DNA of 64,000 bases from Kudoa neothunni (taxonomy: Eukaryota; Animalia; Cnidaria), in NCBI GenBank assembly GCA_964304625.1, contig OZ199840.1:3733631-3797630 (forward strand), in the 5' to 3' direction. The notes beneath the pieces were generated by a model. That model worked only from the letters and a program-made list of their open reading frames with translations, ran no database searches and was not told where the DNA came from. Positions 37,612 through 57,455 of the stretch are shown here, in pieces. How positions within the stretch are numbered: position 1 is the first letter of the stretch; each line of letters opens with the position of its first letter. A program made the position numbers and the translations under genes.

Positions 37612-40600
37612 TCACCAGTATTCGTCATCATTCTGTTTTTCATCGCAGTTGGAAGCAGCATTGTGAGACTCTTGCCATGCAGGGCCTTTACTGTTTGAAT
37701 ATTGTTTTGTGGAGTTGTTAGTGTAGGGATTGGAATCCATAGCATTAAACTTTTGATGATAAAGTTTATCGTTGGATTGTTCACCGTATCTAACGTCACG
37801 TTGGCGATGTACATAATTTCCTTGCGACGCACCAGGATTGCCAAGACTAGCTCCAGCAAGTAGGGTCAACCATTCGGGGACAGTTTGGTTGGCCTATACA
37901 GTCGTTAATTGAGTGGTCAAAGTTAATAATATTATTGTTGTTGTTAAAATTGAGAAAGTAGGCACGCAAAGGAGATTACATTATTGAGAATTTTCAAAAG
38001 ATCGCCCGCCAATGGTTCATCTCGATTTTCTTGGAAGAAACTAATAGCAAGACCGCGATTTCCAATACGTCCAGTTCTACCAATGCGGTGGACATATTCA
38101 TCGACTTCGTGAGGCATATCGTAATTGATGACCAAATCGACAGAGGGTATATCAAGGCCACGAGCAGCGACTGAAGTTGCAACCAGGATAGGGGCGGCGC
38201 CATCAATAAATGAAGCCAAAGCTTGTTCTCGCTGTTGCTGAAGGCGATCTCCATGAATGGAAATAGCGTTGAAACCACTTTCACACAAGTAAATAGTGAG
38301 ATAGTCAGCTTGTCGTTTGGTTTCAACAAAAACCAAAGCTTTGGTCCCAGACGACAGCTCGCCCAATATCTCAACGAGTCGTTCACGTTTCTTTGTGATG
38401 GGTAGCATTTCGAGACTTTGTGAGATGCTGTCAGCAGCACCGCCTACCATACCAACAGTAATAAAGTAGAAATTGGGGTTGAGTATTTCGGCGGCCAATT
38501 TCTGCACATCTGGTGGGAAGGTGGCACTGAACATGTAGCATCGACGCGAATTTTTACCCACTAATCCATAGTCATTGACAATACGTTTAATGTCTCCAAT
38601 GAAACCCATATCCAGCATGCGATCAGCTTCATCCAAAATGAGATATTTGACCCTCTCCAATGACACTTCACCATTTTTGAGGAATGCCAACAATCGACCA
38701 GGTGTGGCTGACAACACATGGCAGTTGTTGTTTAAACCTTTCAGAAGGAAAGATCTCGAAACTCCACCATACACACGGGCGCAATTGATGCTAGTACCCC
38801 AGGAGAATTTTTGCATTTCCATAAACAATTGATTGACCAATTCACGAGTTGGTCCAATAAGCAGAACGGTGGGTGAAGGAACATAGTTGCTTGTTTGCGT
38901 GTGATCATTGTCTGCCAGCATCTTTGAGAAGATTGGAAGTAGGAAAGCTGCTGTTTTGCCCGAACCAGTCTGTGCACATGCCATTATATCGTGTTGAGTC
39001 TTGGTGATGATAGGCATGACACTCTTTTGAATGGGCGTAGGATGGATGTAGTTACAACGTTTCACGTTGGTGTGTATTTGTGGGTGGAGATTACACTGAT
39101 CAAAGGTAGATATTATATCCAACGTCGAACCATCCCCACCAGTCATTTCAACATCAATTTTATCGTAATCACTAAAATTGATTCCACCGCTATTGGTTTT
39201 TTTCTCGAACAAATGTTCCTCATCGTAGTTCAAATAGGCTGGTTCATATGTGATGGGTTGGCGTTGTGGGAAATTCTCATCATCTCCATTGTTCTGGAAA
39301 TCGTCAAAGTTGTTTCTAGGTCTTCCGCTATCAAAATTAGAATCTGCTCTCCTTGTGTATTCACCGTTGTCTCTTTTAGATGAATAGCCGTTAGTATCCC
39401 TATTGGATGTGCTCCATTGATCATTTTCTTTCTTATCTAATTTATCTATTAGGGAGAAAATATTTAAATAGAAGAAAAACTAGAAATAATGATCAATTAT
39501 GACCAATAACTACCACGAAAAACTTAGATTTCGATAATTACATTAACGAATAATTATAAGAGACTCAATATTAAATTATATAAAGCAACAAATTTTTAAA
39601 GTCAAAACTGCGCGATCTGGATGTTTACAAAATTGATGATATTTTTAATAAAAAATATAGTTATAGAAAATAATTAGGATAATGTAAAAATTTAATAAAT
39701 CGTCTTAACTCTCTATTATGGTTGTTATGATAGAACAAATAAATTTTAAATTAAAATTGAATAAATATTCTCCATAGTATCGAATATTTATTAATAAAGC
39801 TGTTGTGATGCGTCTAAAAATATTTAATCGCCATAACCGTTGTTTATGAACGTAAATATTTGCATGGTAAACCACGAAATATAGCAGATTCTAAAAAATT
39901 AAATCTGCGCATAGTTTGAGAGTAAGAGATGTTGGGATTAAAAATTATCGTGAAAATAGCCCCTTAGTCCCAAAATTCATAGGTTACATACACATTTATA
40001 TACATTATTTTGCCTATCTCCTAAGAATAAACGATCAGAATTAAATATAAAAAATATTGAATTATGTTGGTACAATAAACACCTTCGCGATTAAATGATT
40101 AAAACGACTACAATGACTTGTGCTTTGCATAATCAAAATCATTTCACAAAATCCATAAGTCATTTCATTATTTTGTTCAAACTGGGGGTTGTACAAAATT
40201 GTTGTGACGCGACTTCTTAGAAACGCACATGGAAACAATGATCATCAAGACGGAAGTTAATAAATTGCAAGTGGCATAATTAATAAATACAGAATGATAC
40301 TAATTGGCGTTTATGTTGAGTCACATTATATGTTCAGCATCGTTGACCTCAATCATAATCATGAGTATTAATTTTCCATATGGGAGAAAACGAAGCGATG
40401 ATTTATTCTATTAGGCATATTACTGCAATAAAAATACTTAATGAATATCCACAGAATGTGAGAATTTGGAAAAAGAGCAGATTCAAGTATAAATCGCGTA
40501 ATCACGTGGTTATCCAAATGAAGCAGTTTGTACAATAGAAAGAGTGTTCAGCAGGTGGCGTGAGATTCGTAATTTGTGAAAACGTTACAAAATTAGCTTA

Positions 40601-43600
40601 GACATAATGTTGATAATTTATTTATCAAATTATTTAAAAACATTTATTTGGCCATTAAATATATATATATATACATAATTTATAAATAAATTAATTTAAA
40701 TAATTAGTTTTTATAGATTATTTTGTAGTGACGTGTGGTGATTCGTTAGTTCTCAGACGCGTTGAGATTTTTGTTTTCGATTGGTGGCGAAATGGAGACG
40801 GAATTAAAAACTGATTTATGGCATTAAAAGAGAAATATATAATAATAAAGTTTCTCAAAAATTACTATCAAGGCATGGAGCGGAAACAATATTGAAAATG
40901 ACGCCAATATTAATGATTTTATAAGTGATGGTAACTGTCACAGAGATCGGAGATCAGAGATGGCAAGTTTCATAAATTCGATGATAGAGAGCGAAAAATT
41001 ATTCCATTCAAAATTTTCTGTCTTATTCGTCTGATTGAAGACATACATTACTCGAAATATCACGATTTAAATAGTTATAACATCAAAAGGATATTGAACG
41101 AGAAGTACACAATAAAATTGTCAGAATACTTATAATATTCCTATAACTAAGTAATTTCGATCCAAATAATTTACCATTATAGTTGATTTATATCATTTTT
41201 TCTTTCATGGTATCGCGCGCGCAAACATAGAAATTACGAACCACATGTCACTCACTGTATTCACCGTATTACTATTACAGCAATTATGCGCAAGAGCTAA
41301 ACTAAATTTTACTCTATCATTCAACAAGTTGTTCGTCAATTTCAATATAGGGACAAAAACACATTATTTTGATGAATGTAAACCATTATAGATTAAACAC
41401 GGCTTATTTTATTTTAATTCAATAGAATAGTTTGTTTATTTTAGTTACAAACATCCACTCAAGGAAACTTAAAATACTATTTCGCATGCGCGATATCATT
41501 ATTAATCACAAAGGCCCCTCCTTTTGATATGTGATATAGTAGTGATATGTGCCGTTAATTATTTTAAAATATGCCATATTTAATTGTTCATTAATTATCT
41601 CTACGTTAGTGGTTGCCAGAAATAATTGAATACATTCAAAACTGGATCTATTTCAATATTACGGTGAAAAGAATAGCCGTTTTCATTTGGTATTTTTATT
41701 CGTTAAGAATCTGGAAATATTACAATTGGACACTTAAGCGCTTTCATTTCAAGTAGCAGAATACTCTCCGCTTCACTTATTTTTCACAATCACCTCTTAA
41801 TGATTTAATAGAATTTAGATAATTTTTTACCTCAAAGCGCATTCACATAACAACAATTAGTTGCGTAGTTCTCAATATATATTAAATTCTGGTACAACAA
41901 TAGTTAAGGATTTATAAATCAACCAACTAATCAAGGAATAAAATATAATTTAACTTAAATATTTTTTAAAATACTCAAAAGTAATTCGAAAAATGATAAT
42001 GAATTTTAATCTTATCAAGTACATTCGAATATTATGGACATGACTTAACGAGTTTACGTATAAATCACATGCGCCAACAGAACCCATGAAAAATCACTTA
42101 TTATAAATCCCGTAATATAATCAGATAATGTAATTTCTTCTTTGATCAGTTACCAGTTTATTGACCAACTGACTAGCGCGTAGCTCAACCGATTAATTAT
42201 TATAATTTTACAACGAATTACCGATTAAAAATCAAGCTCCGTAAAATGTCAAGTAATGGCCATTAAGGATTGAATTATAATTTAAAAATAAATCGTCTAG
42301 AACAAAAAAGCTAAATGTTAAAATATTTCAAATCCACCATTTTTGAGTTAATCTTCACAACAATTAAAATTTAAATAACTACATGAATAAAATATTCATA
42401 AGCTTCATTTATTTTTAATTTGTTAAGAATCAAACTTATTCTTTTCACACACACAAAATAAATAAACGGATTATCGTGGACAATTAACTAATTCGTCACA
42501 CTTTGTTTGTAATCCTTAGGGGCTGCTCTAGCGTGCACATCCTATTGTAATATTAACTAATTGCTCAATAATTACCATATGCGTGGTTGTCTTGGTGATT
42601 GTTATAGCCATCTTGTCCATCGTAATTGCCTAAATAATTGTTTATTGTGTCGAATATTCGTTGCACAATAAATCGGATTAATACCATTGGTGGGAGTTGT
42701 TCGTTGATTGTCACCCAAATCTTCCCAGTCTATCAACAGAAAATTAAATCAATGATGAGCATTGTGATCGATAATTGTTTACCGTCACCATTGTTGTTGT
42801 TATTGTTATTGTTGGCTAATATACAATAAGCTATAACGATTAAACATCAAATAAAATACCTGACCGAGTATACTGTGTGTTCTGTGCACCACCAATATTT
42901 TGACCTACCATGCACATAAATATAACACCACCTACTTTTTCCATAATATCCTACCATATGTTTCAACATTTGATGCAGCTACAAAAACAAATATCAGTAT
43001 ATCATATAAAAATTAATAGAGCGATTACATGAAGTAGTCGTGGCAGTTTTCGATGTATCTCGGCCATCCCATTCTATTTTAAGTATGTAAATCCCCGCCA
43101 AAAATACCCATGGCAACAACAAAACACCTACCTCCCCAACCAGAATCTCCCTGGCTTTGTTGTTGTTGTTGTTGTTGTTGTTGCTGCTGCTGTTCGATAT
43201 TGCCTCTTTCTAATAAACCAAAATCAATTAATGACACAACAATCACAATCACTTGAATCGGTATGATACGCATGCGTTTCACGTCCCCAATCTGATACAC
43301 ATTATCATTTGATGCGTCGAAAAATTAATAAATACCATCGTTTTGAGTGGTGGGATTTTTGTAGCCTAAATTAGAACATCAATAATGCGAGTGAATTTAT
43401 AATCAACAAGTTGAACCTCCATTCGAATAACTTTCAGTTGATACAGTGAATCCTTAATAAGACAATTGTTGGAAAAAAATTCATAGCACATTAAAATCCA
43501 GTACCATTATTGGTGAAAGTATCACTTGTAGTGGTAGTGGCGGTTTTAGAGTCTACTCCCCAATCTACATTTAAAGTGTATGCGTACAGCTGACTGTGGG

Positions 43601-43827
43601 ACGAAATAAAAATTACCTCCCCAACCACCAGAAGTTTTCTGTTGATCGGCATACGCGGTAGTAGCTTAAATTAATGTTAAATCAAAATTAAATAAAAATC
43701 TAAGCTCAAATAGCACTATTCAAAGAAGGATTTGACTTAAATTTGAGCTGTTCATTCAACCGCCAAATATAGTACTTTTATGTGAAGTAGATTGCTGGTC
43801 TCCAAAATCGTCCCAACCTTCTTCCAT
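37612..43827 (-). CDS. vasa: Vasa / DDX4 germline DEAD-box RNA helicase
   Basis: Core exon 37980-39445 contains GINFSDYDKI, PTPIQ, MACAQTGSGKTAAF, PTRELV, ATPGRL, DEAD, SAT, IHGDRLQQQRE, ARGLD and YVHRIGRTGR. Last exon 37612-37893 ends in acidic residues plus Trp (NDDEYW*), a Vasa hallmark. The core has no in-frame ATG ahead of its phase-1 acceptor; the N-terminus MEEGWDD.. starts at 43827 and is supplied by phase-1 micro-exons (linkage across the ~3-kb intron is inferred). Confidence 0.9.
40150..40600 (+). pseudogene. Possible PIF/Harbinger transposase relic in the vasa intron
   Basis: Fragments ILIGVYVESHYMFSIVD and CTIERVFSRWR loosely match Harbinger nuclease motifs; heavily decayed. Confidence 0.3.
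43157..43192 (-). repeat. (CAG)3(CAA)9 coding microsatellite, 12 Gln, in a vasa micro-exon
   Basis: Direct reading of the TTG/CTG run on the plus strand. Confidence 0.85.
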
Positions 43828-44695
43828 ATTTGCAGAGCGAGCTTCTACTCGGATTACGTTAGTCGCCGAAGCATTACCATGCCTTAAGTGTGCCATTAAC
43901 AAATTACGATGTTTGTTATCGGTAGTATATCCCATTAATTGTTGTATTGATTTTTTATTTGGAAAAAACATTTTGGGCCCACCACATAACTAACGCAATA
44001 GTTTGCGGTATTGAAACGATTATATTTTAATCGTGTTAAATACCACATTTTAATTTTCTTAATCTAGGATTAGGTTTATTTCCTATTTAAACTGATTTTA
44101 ACCGGTAAGAAGATAGTGAATAGATACGGATCAATACCGGAACGTTTTTCATAATACCTTTTCAGTTTTAATCCCACATTATGAGTTTAGTTCGATTTTT
44201 ACTTGATGAACTACTTAGTTGACGCCATTATTCGAGATATTAGCCCAATTATGTTTTAACATTTCTTTTTTAAATAATGTATTTAGTTAAACTTTCGAAT
44301 GAATAATAATTTTATTCCATTTTTAATTAACAGCAAATATATATTTTTTATCCTGTAATCCCCAACTTACCATGCTAACAAAAAGGTATCATCCTAAAAA
44401 TCAACTAACTAAGGTCTTACTGTCGTGATCTACTCTCCACCTAAAATTAAATAATCTATAACTTTGTCGGTGACATGGTGCGTTCATATATGTGTCAACA
44501 TATAGCTGTTAATTGCTAATTATCTTAATATAAACTGTTTTTTTAAAAGTGGTCCGTGTTATCTATACTATTGATTTTGTAATGTTTCCCCGAATTTATC
44601 ACATCAAATTTGAATTTTTCCATACGTGTAAAATAATGGAATTGTTAAAATTATAAGGCGTTTTAGATAGGAAATAGTTATTTGCCGGGTAAATA

Positions 44696-56333: not shown

Positions 56334-57455
56334 ATGTTTGTAACTACTATAATGTCGGGAGTAATTGTATTTTTGAAACAGTTACACTGTTTATTCAAAT
56401 TAAATGTATGCATGTTTAGAATCAAAGAAGTTTCATGATTATCGGATATGGCATGATGTTGTTGGGAACAGTTTTGTTCATATTAGCTATGACATCACAA
56501 ACATTTCTAAAAGCGACAACCCAACATGTGATTTTTAACTTTTTCGAGTTGAACATGGGCATTCTTGCAGGATGCTATAAAACCACCCTCTCTTCATCAA
56601 TATGTTTACAGGAATTGGGATATTTGGTTCGAAGTTATTAACTTATTAATCATCTCTCTAATTACATTTGTTTCCACTATTTAATATAGGTACTTTTATT
56701 CAACCGCCACCAAAAGGAATGCCTGGTAGTCCTTGTTATTTGGGTTTTAGTAATGGCAATACATAGACAATGTGATTGCAATTGATGGTCCTGGATACAT
56801 GACCAATATGTTCAGTACAAAATCATTTATTTATCAATATAATGTATTTTATAGATTCAACTAATGTCGATATTTGTATGTGAGACAATTTTAGATGCTA
56901 ATATCATATTTTTTAGTATCTGAAACAGCTTCGTTGATATTTGTTAACATACCCTCTAATATATGTATGCTTTATTACTACACCATCAAGAACGAAAATA
57001 ATGAGAACCTATGCTAAAGGAAATTTTATTATTAATAATGCTTTTTTAGTTAAAGTTGCATCCCCTGAAAGCAGAAAAATTAAAGCGTTTAGTATAATTT
57101 CAGTGTGTACAACAATATTTTCATCGATACTTTTATTCTACTACCTTCGAAGAAGCGATATATATGGATACATATTATCAGGGACCTGTTTTCTTTCAAG
57201 TAATCATCAATTTTTCGTATTAAAATTAACTCATTTTGATAATAAAATACAGCCATCATATTATTCTCAATTGCATACGAATTGACAAGCTTTTTGAAAG
57301 GTGAATTTAGTGTAACCAGTCGTTACATTTTGGAGATGGGTCCATCCAATTCTTTTATGTGGTCCGGAGTTATGCTGCATTTCCTCGGAAACGTCCTTTG
57401 TCTCATTCCTACAACGATCTATTCGATCAAATTATTGCGACATAATAAATTTTAA
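56334..57455 (+). CDS. Claudin/PMP22-superfamily-like four-TM protein with a micro-exon-built first loop
   Basis: TM1 (IIGYGMMLLGTVLFILAM), loop motif MGILAGCY......IC resembling claudin GLWxxC..C, three further hydrophobic segments, and GPSNSFMWSGVMLHFLG before and within TM4. Eight exons splice in frame to TAA at 57453-57455. Confidence 0.65.

Follow-up and report, generated by a model that had tools for sequence, protein, structure and literature searches.

The genome of the myxozoan Kudoa neothunni contains a Vasa/DDX4-type gene whose N-terminal tail is very probably encoded by a run of 12, perhaps 13, consecutive micro-exons, each a multiple of three nucleotides (nt) in length and each flanked by phase-1 introns on both sides. 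The gene lies on the minus strand of a 64,000-nt stretch of DNA (contig OZ199840.1 of assembly GCA_964304625.1, positions 3,733,631 to 3,797,630), which we refer to as the window and to which coordinates refer unless another source is named. The K. neothunni assembly spans 40.2 megabases in 3 chromosomes plus a mitochondrial contig, with 30.4% GC and an exon length of 112 base pairs (bp) (PMC12239612). The GC content of the window is about 30%. As reconstructed from the DNA sequence, the coding sequence amounts to 778 codons, or 785 if the doubtful element 42502-42522 is included, and the constitutive product is probably one that contains the full micro-exon array, a single exon for the helicase core and a short last exon.

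An array of symmetric micro-exons

A preliminary description of the window, made from its letters and a list of their open reading frames (ORFs), had listed 12 minus-strand exons upstream of a helicase. All of their coordinates, AG/GT bounds, lengths divisible by three and phase 1-1 boundaries could be reproduced (Table 1). Each of the 12 firm internal exons (24-78 nt) is preceded by AG, followed by GT and open when read at offset 2. The introns that separate them measure 43-58 nt, and GTA is found at 11 of the 13 donors of the array; published work on Kudoa gives 49 bp as the intron length of K. neothunni and describes the 5' splice site as reduced to GTa (PMC12239612, PMC13644364). The description had also remarked that the ORF track is nearly blind to the array, and the list indeed catches just two fragments of it. 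An introner-like origin of the array introns was considered and rejected, as these introns form no repeat family and the array is single-copy in a search of the whole genome.

The first coding exon encodes an acidic-Trp-acidic start, MEEGWDDFGD. The DNA upstream of 43830 is non-coding in appearance. The frame of this exon stays open upstream as far as 43971 and contains more in-frame ATGs (ORF 43756-43971), and the exact start is uncertain. At the other end of the array, the preliminary description had proposed 42502-42522 as a possible further micro-exon. This element is AG/GT-bounded, open and in phase 1 as proposed and is thus formally valid, yet its splice context is weak, with a GTG donor, an acceptor tract that is not AT-rich and a rival acceptor 3 nt upstream, and its coding score reaches only +2.4 to +3.9 bits. 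Micro-exon 11 has an alternative in-frame donor at 42789, 6 nt upstream of the main one, which would give 42789-42815 and add or remove Gly-Asp.

Table 1. Coding exons and main introns of the candidate Vasa/DDX4 gene, in the order of transcription
Feature	Position	Strand	Length	Phase	Remarks
First coding exon	43776-43827	minus	52 nt	1 out	from ATG at 43827
Micro-exon 2	43617-43664	minus	48 nt	1-1	SGGWG at end
Micro-exon 3	43505-43564	minus	60 nt	1-1	(D)WG at start; contains KTATTTT
Micro-exon 4	43417-43452	minus	36 nt	1-1	
Micro-exon 5	43336-43365	minus	30 nt	1-1	
Micro-exon 6	43253-43291	minus	39 nt	1-1	(D)WG at start
Micro-exon 7	43132-43209	minus	78 nt	1-1	poly-Q run; SGWG at end
Micro-exon 8	43029-43073	minus	45 nt	1-1	(E)WD at start; contains KTATTTS
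Micro-exon 9	42955-42978	minus	24 nt	1-1	smallest of the array
Micro-exon 10	42860-42904	minus	45 nt	1-1	
Micro-exon 11	42783-42815	minus	33 nt	1-1	poly-N
Micro-exon 12	42685-42729	minus	45 nt	1-1	(D)WEDLGDNQ at start
Micro-exon 13	42576-42629	minus	54 nt	1-1	last firm exon of the array
Possible extra micro-exon	42502-42522	minus	21 nt, or 24 nt with acceptor at 42525		weak
Long intron	39446-42501	minus	about 3.06 kb (3.13 kb without 42502-42522)	1	AT-rich, GC 0.28
Helicase exon	37980-39445	minus	1466 nt	1 in, 0 out	
Last intron	37894-37979	minus	86 nt	0	directly ahead of A.Q.VP.WL motif
Last coding exon	37612-37893	minus	93 codons + stop		acidic-Trp tail, DDEYW at end

The chain of exons stands out from its background

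The whole 64-kilobase (kb) window was subjected to a strict chain scan that allowed introns of 40-65 nt, GT[AGT] donors and phase-1 exons. The longest phase-1 chain, of 13 exons, fell at the array, and the runner-up had 6. Thirty simulated 64-kb sequences with the composition of the window produced chain maxima of 3-7, and 30 with the composition of the array region produced maxima of 5-9. Moreover, exons and introns of the array differ in base composition (Mann-Whitney p = 6e-5): GC is about 0.42-0.43 in the array exons and 0.43 in the helicase exon, as compared with about 0.29-0.30 in the array introns and 0.28 in the long intron. A codon log-odds score, trained on the long ORFs of the window versus non-coding DNA, gave the array exons +86 bits in the claimed frame and +36 and -31 bits in the other two, while the concatenated array introns scored between -61 and -101 bits. 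Taken with the duplications described below, these results lead us to regard the array structure as very probably real. As a separate observation, the strict scan also returned a 5-exon phase-1 chain on the plus strand at 56571-56964, with a GC contrast of 0.35 versus 0.24.

Exon-intron units have been duplicated within the array

Several parts of the array are copies of one another. The unit 43664-43505, which consists of an exon, a 52-nt intron and a second exon, can be aligned with 43209-43029, which consists of an exon, a 58-nt intron and a second exon. Within this pair, the 3' end and donor region of 43617-43664 are duplicated at 43132-43209, and exon 43505-43564 is a duplicate of 43029-43073; the two differ chiefly in the third positions of codons. 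Of the four differences within the KTATTT stretch, three are synonymous third-position changes in the claimed frame, whereas in the other open frame every one of them changes an amino acid. The intron between the duplicated exons has diverged more than the exons themselves. In addition, 42685-42729 holds an internal copy of the exon 1 motif (WDDFGDQQ versus WEDLGDNQ). The preliminary description had named SGGWG and SGWG as well as GWDDFGDQQ and DWEDLGDNQ among its probable duplicates, and the alignments show that the resemblances it listed are genuine.

The duplicated units and the motif copy indicate that the array grew at least partly through tandem duplication of exon-intron units, and because these units are phase 1-1, each duplication would have kept the frame. 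We therefore know part of the history of the array from the aligned units; for the remainder we infer a similar course, in which the array would have expanded through tandem duplication of exon-intron-exon units.

The array is predicted to join the helicase exon

The helicase exon encodes a low-complexity lead-in of about 85 amino acids (aa) followed by the entire DEAD/Helicase_C core, which is intronless. The preliminary statement that the core is one 1466-bp exon is thus borne out, since both the DEAD and the Helicase_C domains are complete in 37980-39445. The frame of this exon is closed 12 codons upstream of its acceptor, and its first in-frame Met sits within the conserved GINF..Y..I.V region. 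Upstream coding exons are therefore required, as the frame cannot be extended and no ATG lies ahead of conserved sequence. Upstream on the minus strand, nothing but the array has a coding-like appearance. A scan of the 3-kb intron for extra exons yielded none that was convincing and none with both an ATG and a coding signal.

The donors of the array and the helicase acceptor at 39445 share phase 1, which is consistent with the junction that the preliminary description had predicted between them. When the helicase acceptor was read in phase 0, an immediate stop resulted. The reading frame of the array is fixed jointly by four features: the ATG of the first exon, the acceptor of the helicase exon, the codon score, and third-position differences between duplicated exons.

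The gene is of the Vasa type

The helicase exon gave domain matches to PF00270 (DEAD; 1.7e-43) and PF00271 (Helicase_C; 2.7e-33). Sequence searches with the helicase used two segments, 38640-39443 and 37980-38600. Among PDB entries, the C-terminal half scored 205.5 bits with fly Vasa and 197.3 bits with silkworm Vasa versus 180.7 bits with DDX3X, and the N-terminal half scored 150 bits with planarian VLGB and 146 bits with silkworm Vasa versus about 129 bits with DDX3X. The genome holds a single close paralogue, on C1 (G000:C1:1758444-1763985; L011, L002), which gave the reverse order, with 196.8 bits for DDX3X versus 167.9 bits for Vasa. By this score ranking, on which the assignment to Vasa or PL10 rests, the gene in the window is of the Vasa/DDX4 type and not PL10, the C1 paralogue is a PL10 gene, and the window gene is read as the single Vasa/DDX4 of K. 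neothunni. The PL10/DDX3 paralogue has its core in several exons across about 5 kb and an RGG-rich C-terminus ending ...DRDRW.

Both ends of the predicted protein carry Vasa traits. Conserved W, D and E residues beside the start codon are typical of Ddx4 (PMC9735842), and M followed by 0-6 residues and [DE]W[DE] was found at the start of 81 of 107 full-length DDX4 matches. MEEGWDDFGD shows the conserved residues, though Gly precedes its Trp rather than an acidic residue as in that stricter pattern. An acidic C-terminal motif with Trp as the last or second-last residue is Vasa-specific and absent from DDX3/Belle (PMC4400588); the Kudoa protein ends DDEYW, and W occurs in the last 3 residues of 105 of the 107 DDX4 matches. 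RGG repeats and CCHC zinc knuckles, which are common but not universal in Vasa, are missing from the array product (its 197 aa include 5 Arg and lack Cys), and we treated them as a variable feature whose absence does not disqualify the gene.

The top relatives were proteins of Henneguya salminicola and Myxobolus squamalis, and the named best matches of the Henneguya protein outside the myxozoans were nearly all DDX4/vasa. In an exhaustive search of proteins, the N-terminal half of the core reached at best 49% identity (Henneguya), and no gene model or transcript of the locus came up. The literature that we searched held no description of a myxozoan Vasa gene and nothing that links Myxozoa to vasa gene structure.

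The array encodes an acidic, tryptophan-marked tail

The array product is about 197 aa long, consists to 69% of T, Q, G, N, D and S, and has a net charge of -18 and a hydrophobic fraction of 10%. It contains 7 Trp residues, every one flanked by G, D or E, and 3 Phe residues. The motif (D/E)W opens 4 exons, and GWG closes 2. Judged by its sequence, the tail is a string of copies of the acidic-Trp start motif with T/N/Q-rich spacers. In this it is unlike the known phase-separating DDX4 tail, which is RG/FG-rich, and unlike other cnidarian Vasa tails, which are of the zinc-knuckle type. We propose that the repeats would serve as a multivalent interaction or condensation tail.

The Kudoa modules repeat a two-part pattern in which (D/E)W is followed by a T-rich segment. 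Many fish Vasa proteins (P0154-P0198) have an acidic-Trp motif at the start with a Thr-rich run directly after it, and the sponge Vasa (P0211) has three W-x-acidic motifs near its start.

Exon skipping is permitted, with full inclusion as the likely default

The preliminary description had pointed out that any subset of the micro-exons could be skipped in frame. The arithmetic holds, in that 105 of 105 possible forward exon-exon junctions are in frame and create no stop, so that skipping is permitted. This frame symmetry is no evidence for regulated skipping, because the duplication of 1-1 units yields symmetry automatically. Retention of any array intron, in turn, leads to a frameshift or a stop. 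Minimal introns such as these (43-58 nt) imply splicing by intron definition. Myxozoans have been reported to be prone to intron retention (PMC12239612). Given the intron length of about 50 nt and this tendency, constitutive inclusion is the more likely default; the spliceosome would remove each short intron by intron definition, and the default product would contain all micro-exons.

The layout compared with other Vasa genes

Annotated Vasa proteins were mapped back onto their own loci for comparison. In the sponge Oscarella lobularis (P0211/L013), the N-terminus is encoded by a 39-nt first exon (M..WEED), a 0-to-1 exon and four 1-1 exons of 93, 87, 105 and 69 nt with one CCHC knuckle apiece; a phase-1 acceptor lies 8 aa before PPIYVPP, and the core has four introns plus a phase-0 intron before A.Q.VP.FL. 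The sea anemone Actinia tenebrosa (P0156/L012) follows the Oscarella plan, with a single 291-nt 1-1 exon, a phase-1 acceptor and the same core plan. Kudoa shares with both the short M-acidic-W exon, the 1-1 exons and the phase-1 acceptor. It differs from them in the number and size of its micro-exons (12, perhaps 13, of 24-78 nt) and in lacking both zinc knuckles and core introns, whereas the 1-1 exons of Oscarella and Actinia span 69-291 nt and carry CCHC knuckles, and their cores have four more introns.

In fish vasa/ddx4 genes (tongue sole, zebrafish, flounder and sturgeon), the low-complexity N-terminus likewise lies on a run of small exons, and both the acidic-Trp start and the acidic-Trp end recur. 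The sturgeon gene (L005) has a 48-nt 1-1 exon, phase-1 entry to the core and many core introns; its solvable junctions are phase 1, and two isoform records use them differently, skipping 1-1 exons in frame. For fish vasa, small exons of, for example, 48 and 54 bp have been described, with RG/RGG repeats on exons 4-12, and isoforms that skip small N-terminal exons are known from several fishes, Japanese flounder having as many as ten (PMC3966880). Fish vasa differs from the Kudoa gene in its RG/RGG exons, long introns, many-exon core and isoforms proven by complementary DNA, as opposed to acidic-Trp and T/Q/N-rich modules, introns of about 50 nt and a one-exon core. One protein, P0152, was considered as a possible parasite contaminant in the sturgeon assembly; it proved to be the sturgeon's own DDX4 and was kept for the vertebrate comparison only.

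Henneguya HZS_4593 and Myxobolus MXB_1870 resemble the Kudoa gene in their one-exon core, the phase-1 intron ahead of it and the acidic-Trp tail, and also in the phase-0 intron before A.Q.(D/T)(I/V)P..L, as seen in Myxobolus. Neither has core introns. Only 143 nt of the Henneguya contig (L003) lie upstream of the core exon. In Myxobolus, an N-terminus of about 150 aa is encoded by 3-4 exons, and the phase-1 intron before the core is 424 nt long, versus a median intron of 22-27 nt in the myxobolid family (PMC13644364). The Myxobolus N-terminus differs in having one Trp, an R/N/D/F-rich composition and no micro-exon array; it also lacks CCHC and RGG. The annotation of Myxobolus squamalis MXB_1870 reads through a 24-nt GT...AG segment (L004:144-167), which results in the insert GIVHIFIQ; this segment probably represents an ultra-short intron, of the type described from myxobolids (PMC13644364), that the annotation missed. 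Across these genes, the phase-0 intron before A.Q.VP.(W/F)L is common to Kudoa, Myxobolus, sponge, sea anemone and sturgeon (window 37894-37979; L004 2253-2292; L013 4400-4454; L012 10907-11566), and all other Vasa core introns are absent in the myxozoans.

A phase-1 modular N-terminus was thus found in Kudoa, sponge, sea anemone and sturgeon. The preliminary description had suggested a comparison of exon number and phase between species, and the symmetric phase-1 layout does recur from sponge to fish, although the extent of this sharing had been understated. Since sponge, anemone and fish share the phase-1 plan, the Kudoa layout can be seen as the Vasa layout at an extreme: going by the gene structures compared here, it is not new, and what sets it apart is that its modules are more numerous, smaller and of another kind and that its core has lost its introns. 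We propose that a phase-1 modular N-terminus with a phase-1 core acceptor would be an old Vasa feature, and that the Kudoa lineage would have lost all core introns as well as the zinc-knuckle and RGG modules, while small acidic-Trp modules multiplied instead.

The parallel that the preliminary description had drawn to the micro-exon genes (MEGs) of schistosomes turned out to be a poor fit. In schistosomes, MEG variation arises through exon skipping. The Kudoa gene resembles these MEGs, and the micro-exon gene described from the myxozoan Tetracapsuloides bryosalmonae (PMC8481699), in its run of short exons divisible by three and in frame-safe skipping. In the literature searched, Myxozoa and micro-exons were linked only via one T. 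bryosalmonae surface antigen. However, MEG products are secreted or surface proteins encoded by micro-exons almost throughout, whereas the Kudoa gene encodes a cytoplasmic helicase and has no more than about a quarter of its coding sequence in micro-exons (537-558 of 2334-2355 nt, about 23-25%). Hydrophobic residues make up a fraction of just 0.10 of the acidic, hydrophilic N-terminus, and judged from this composition the protein has no signal peptide.

Alternative readings of the array

Several observations weigh against an expressed Vasa gene built on an old phase-1 plan. The locus was found in none of the RNA contigs, and for the published annotation of the K. neothunni genome RNA reads were too few for use (PMC12239612). 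Neither the exhaustive protein search nor a metagenome scan returned same-genus relatives. The phase-1 acceptor lies 66 aa upstream of the Y-x-P motif in Kudoa versus 4-17 aa elsewhere, and because it is embedded in unalignable low-complexity sequence, its homology across phyla is unprovable. The 3-kb intron is unusual where a typical intron has about 50 nt, and an alternative first exon inside it is possible. Finally, a loose scan (introns of 40-120 nt, any GT) returned chains of 10-17 exons elsewhere in the window, including chains of 14-17, and the offset-0 frame of the array exons contains just one stop, which is avoidable via an internal acceptor. AG/GT bounds with an open frame are thus weak evidence when taken alone, and the openness of the array exons is partly compositional, given that a second frame is almost open. 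These last two points would suit a chance pattern, in which the exons are meaningless open AG...GT segments in an AT-rich, T-poor stretch. So would the outcome of the strict scan in a 200-kb sample of the three chromosomes, where chains of up to 10 were found, those of 8-10 within long ORFs. In the sampled chains, however, the GC of 'exons' and 'introns' differs by no more than about 0.07, often with the opposite sign, as if long ORFs had been cut at arbitrary points; they lack the sharp alternation of GC-richer exons and GC-poorer introns that marks the array. The strict scan and the simulations pick out the array chain alone, its intron lengths are tightly clustered, and both the codon score and the pattern seen in the duplicates speak for a true coding chain. 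A chance origin is extremely improbable and already looks untenable. It is also quite improbable that the array stands outside the Vasa mRNA, either as a small gene in its own right or as a remnant in decay, with the first Vasa exon hidden in the 3-kb interval. Such an arrangement would account for a 3.06-kb gap about 60 times the typical intron of the genome (PMC12239612) and would agree with the much shorter Vasa N-terminus of Myxobolus, yet it is at odds with the matching phases of donor and acceptor, with the Vasa start motif in exon 1, with the positive coding potential and synonymous type of substitution in the array, and with an interval devoid of any exon that combines an ATG with a coding signal. 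The Myxobolus phase-1 intron at this place is also unusually long, at 424 nt versus 22-27 nt (PMC13644364).

If the array does belong to the Vasa mRNA, as we favour, its exons could be included constitutively or could act as combinatorial cassettes, with regulated skipping of subsets, for instance by life stage, tuning the length or valency of the Vasa tail. The frame-safe junctions (105 of 105) would allow this, as would the tandem in-frame donor at 42783/42789 and acceptor at 42522/42525, and there are precedents in fish vasa isoforms that differ in small N-terminal exons (PMC3966880) and in the sturgeon isoform records that skip phase 1-1 exons. We nevertheless regard regulated skipping as unlikely, in view of the frame symmetry being a by-product of 1-1 unit duplication and of introns of 43-58 nt favouring intron definition, and hence retention over skipping, as a matter of general knowledge. 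Further arguments against it are the proneness of myxozoans to intron retention (PMC12239612), where retained array introns break the frame, and the lack of any RNA contig that holds the locus. A more specific proposal, that of a valency dial, is likewise unlikely: up to seven acidic-Trp copies, each on a frame-neutral exon of its own, would replace the RGG and zinc-knuckle modules, and exon skipping would vary their number between proliferative and spore-forming stages. In its broader form, this proposal would make the modular phase-1 N-terminus a device of ancestral metazoans that allows lineages to swap the tail modules of Vasa freely.

Implications of the gene structure

With constitutive inclusion of the array as the preferred reading, annotation guided by protein hints or ORFs would cut about 200 aa off the Kudoa Vasa. 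The gene also combines two opposite outcomes, as all core introns have been lost and 12-13 introns are present in the disordered tail, and the array shows neatly how low-complexity regions can be built up when phase 1-1 units are duplicated in tandem. It involves no new mechanism, since small N-terminal exons of vasa and their alternative use are already known. With phase-1 N-terminal modules present in sponge, anemone, fish and myxozoan, the idea of an ancestral layout becomes testable; such a layout, if true, would explain why Vasa tails differ so strongly between phyla.

Further observations on the assembly

Two features outside the window were noted. A (TAAACC)n array of about 530 nt occupies the extreme end of C2 (12039536-12040069 of 12,040,071), and five exact copies of the unit occur nowhere else in the genome; one telomeric (TAAACC)n end has been reported for K. 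neothunni (PMC12239612), in agreement with the C2 array. The fourth contig of the assembly, of about 18.2 kb by subtraction, is probably the mitochondrial genome.

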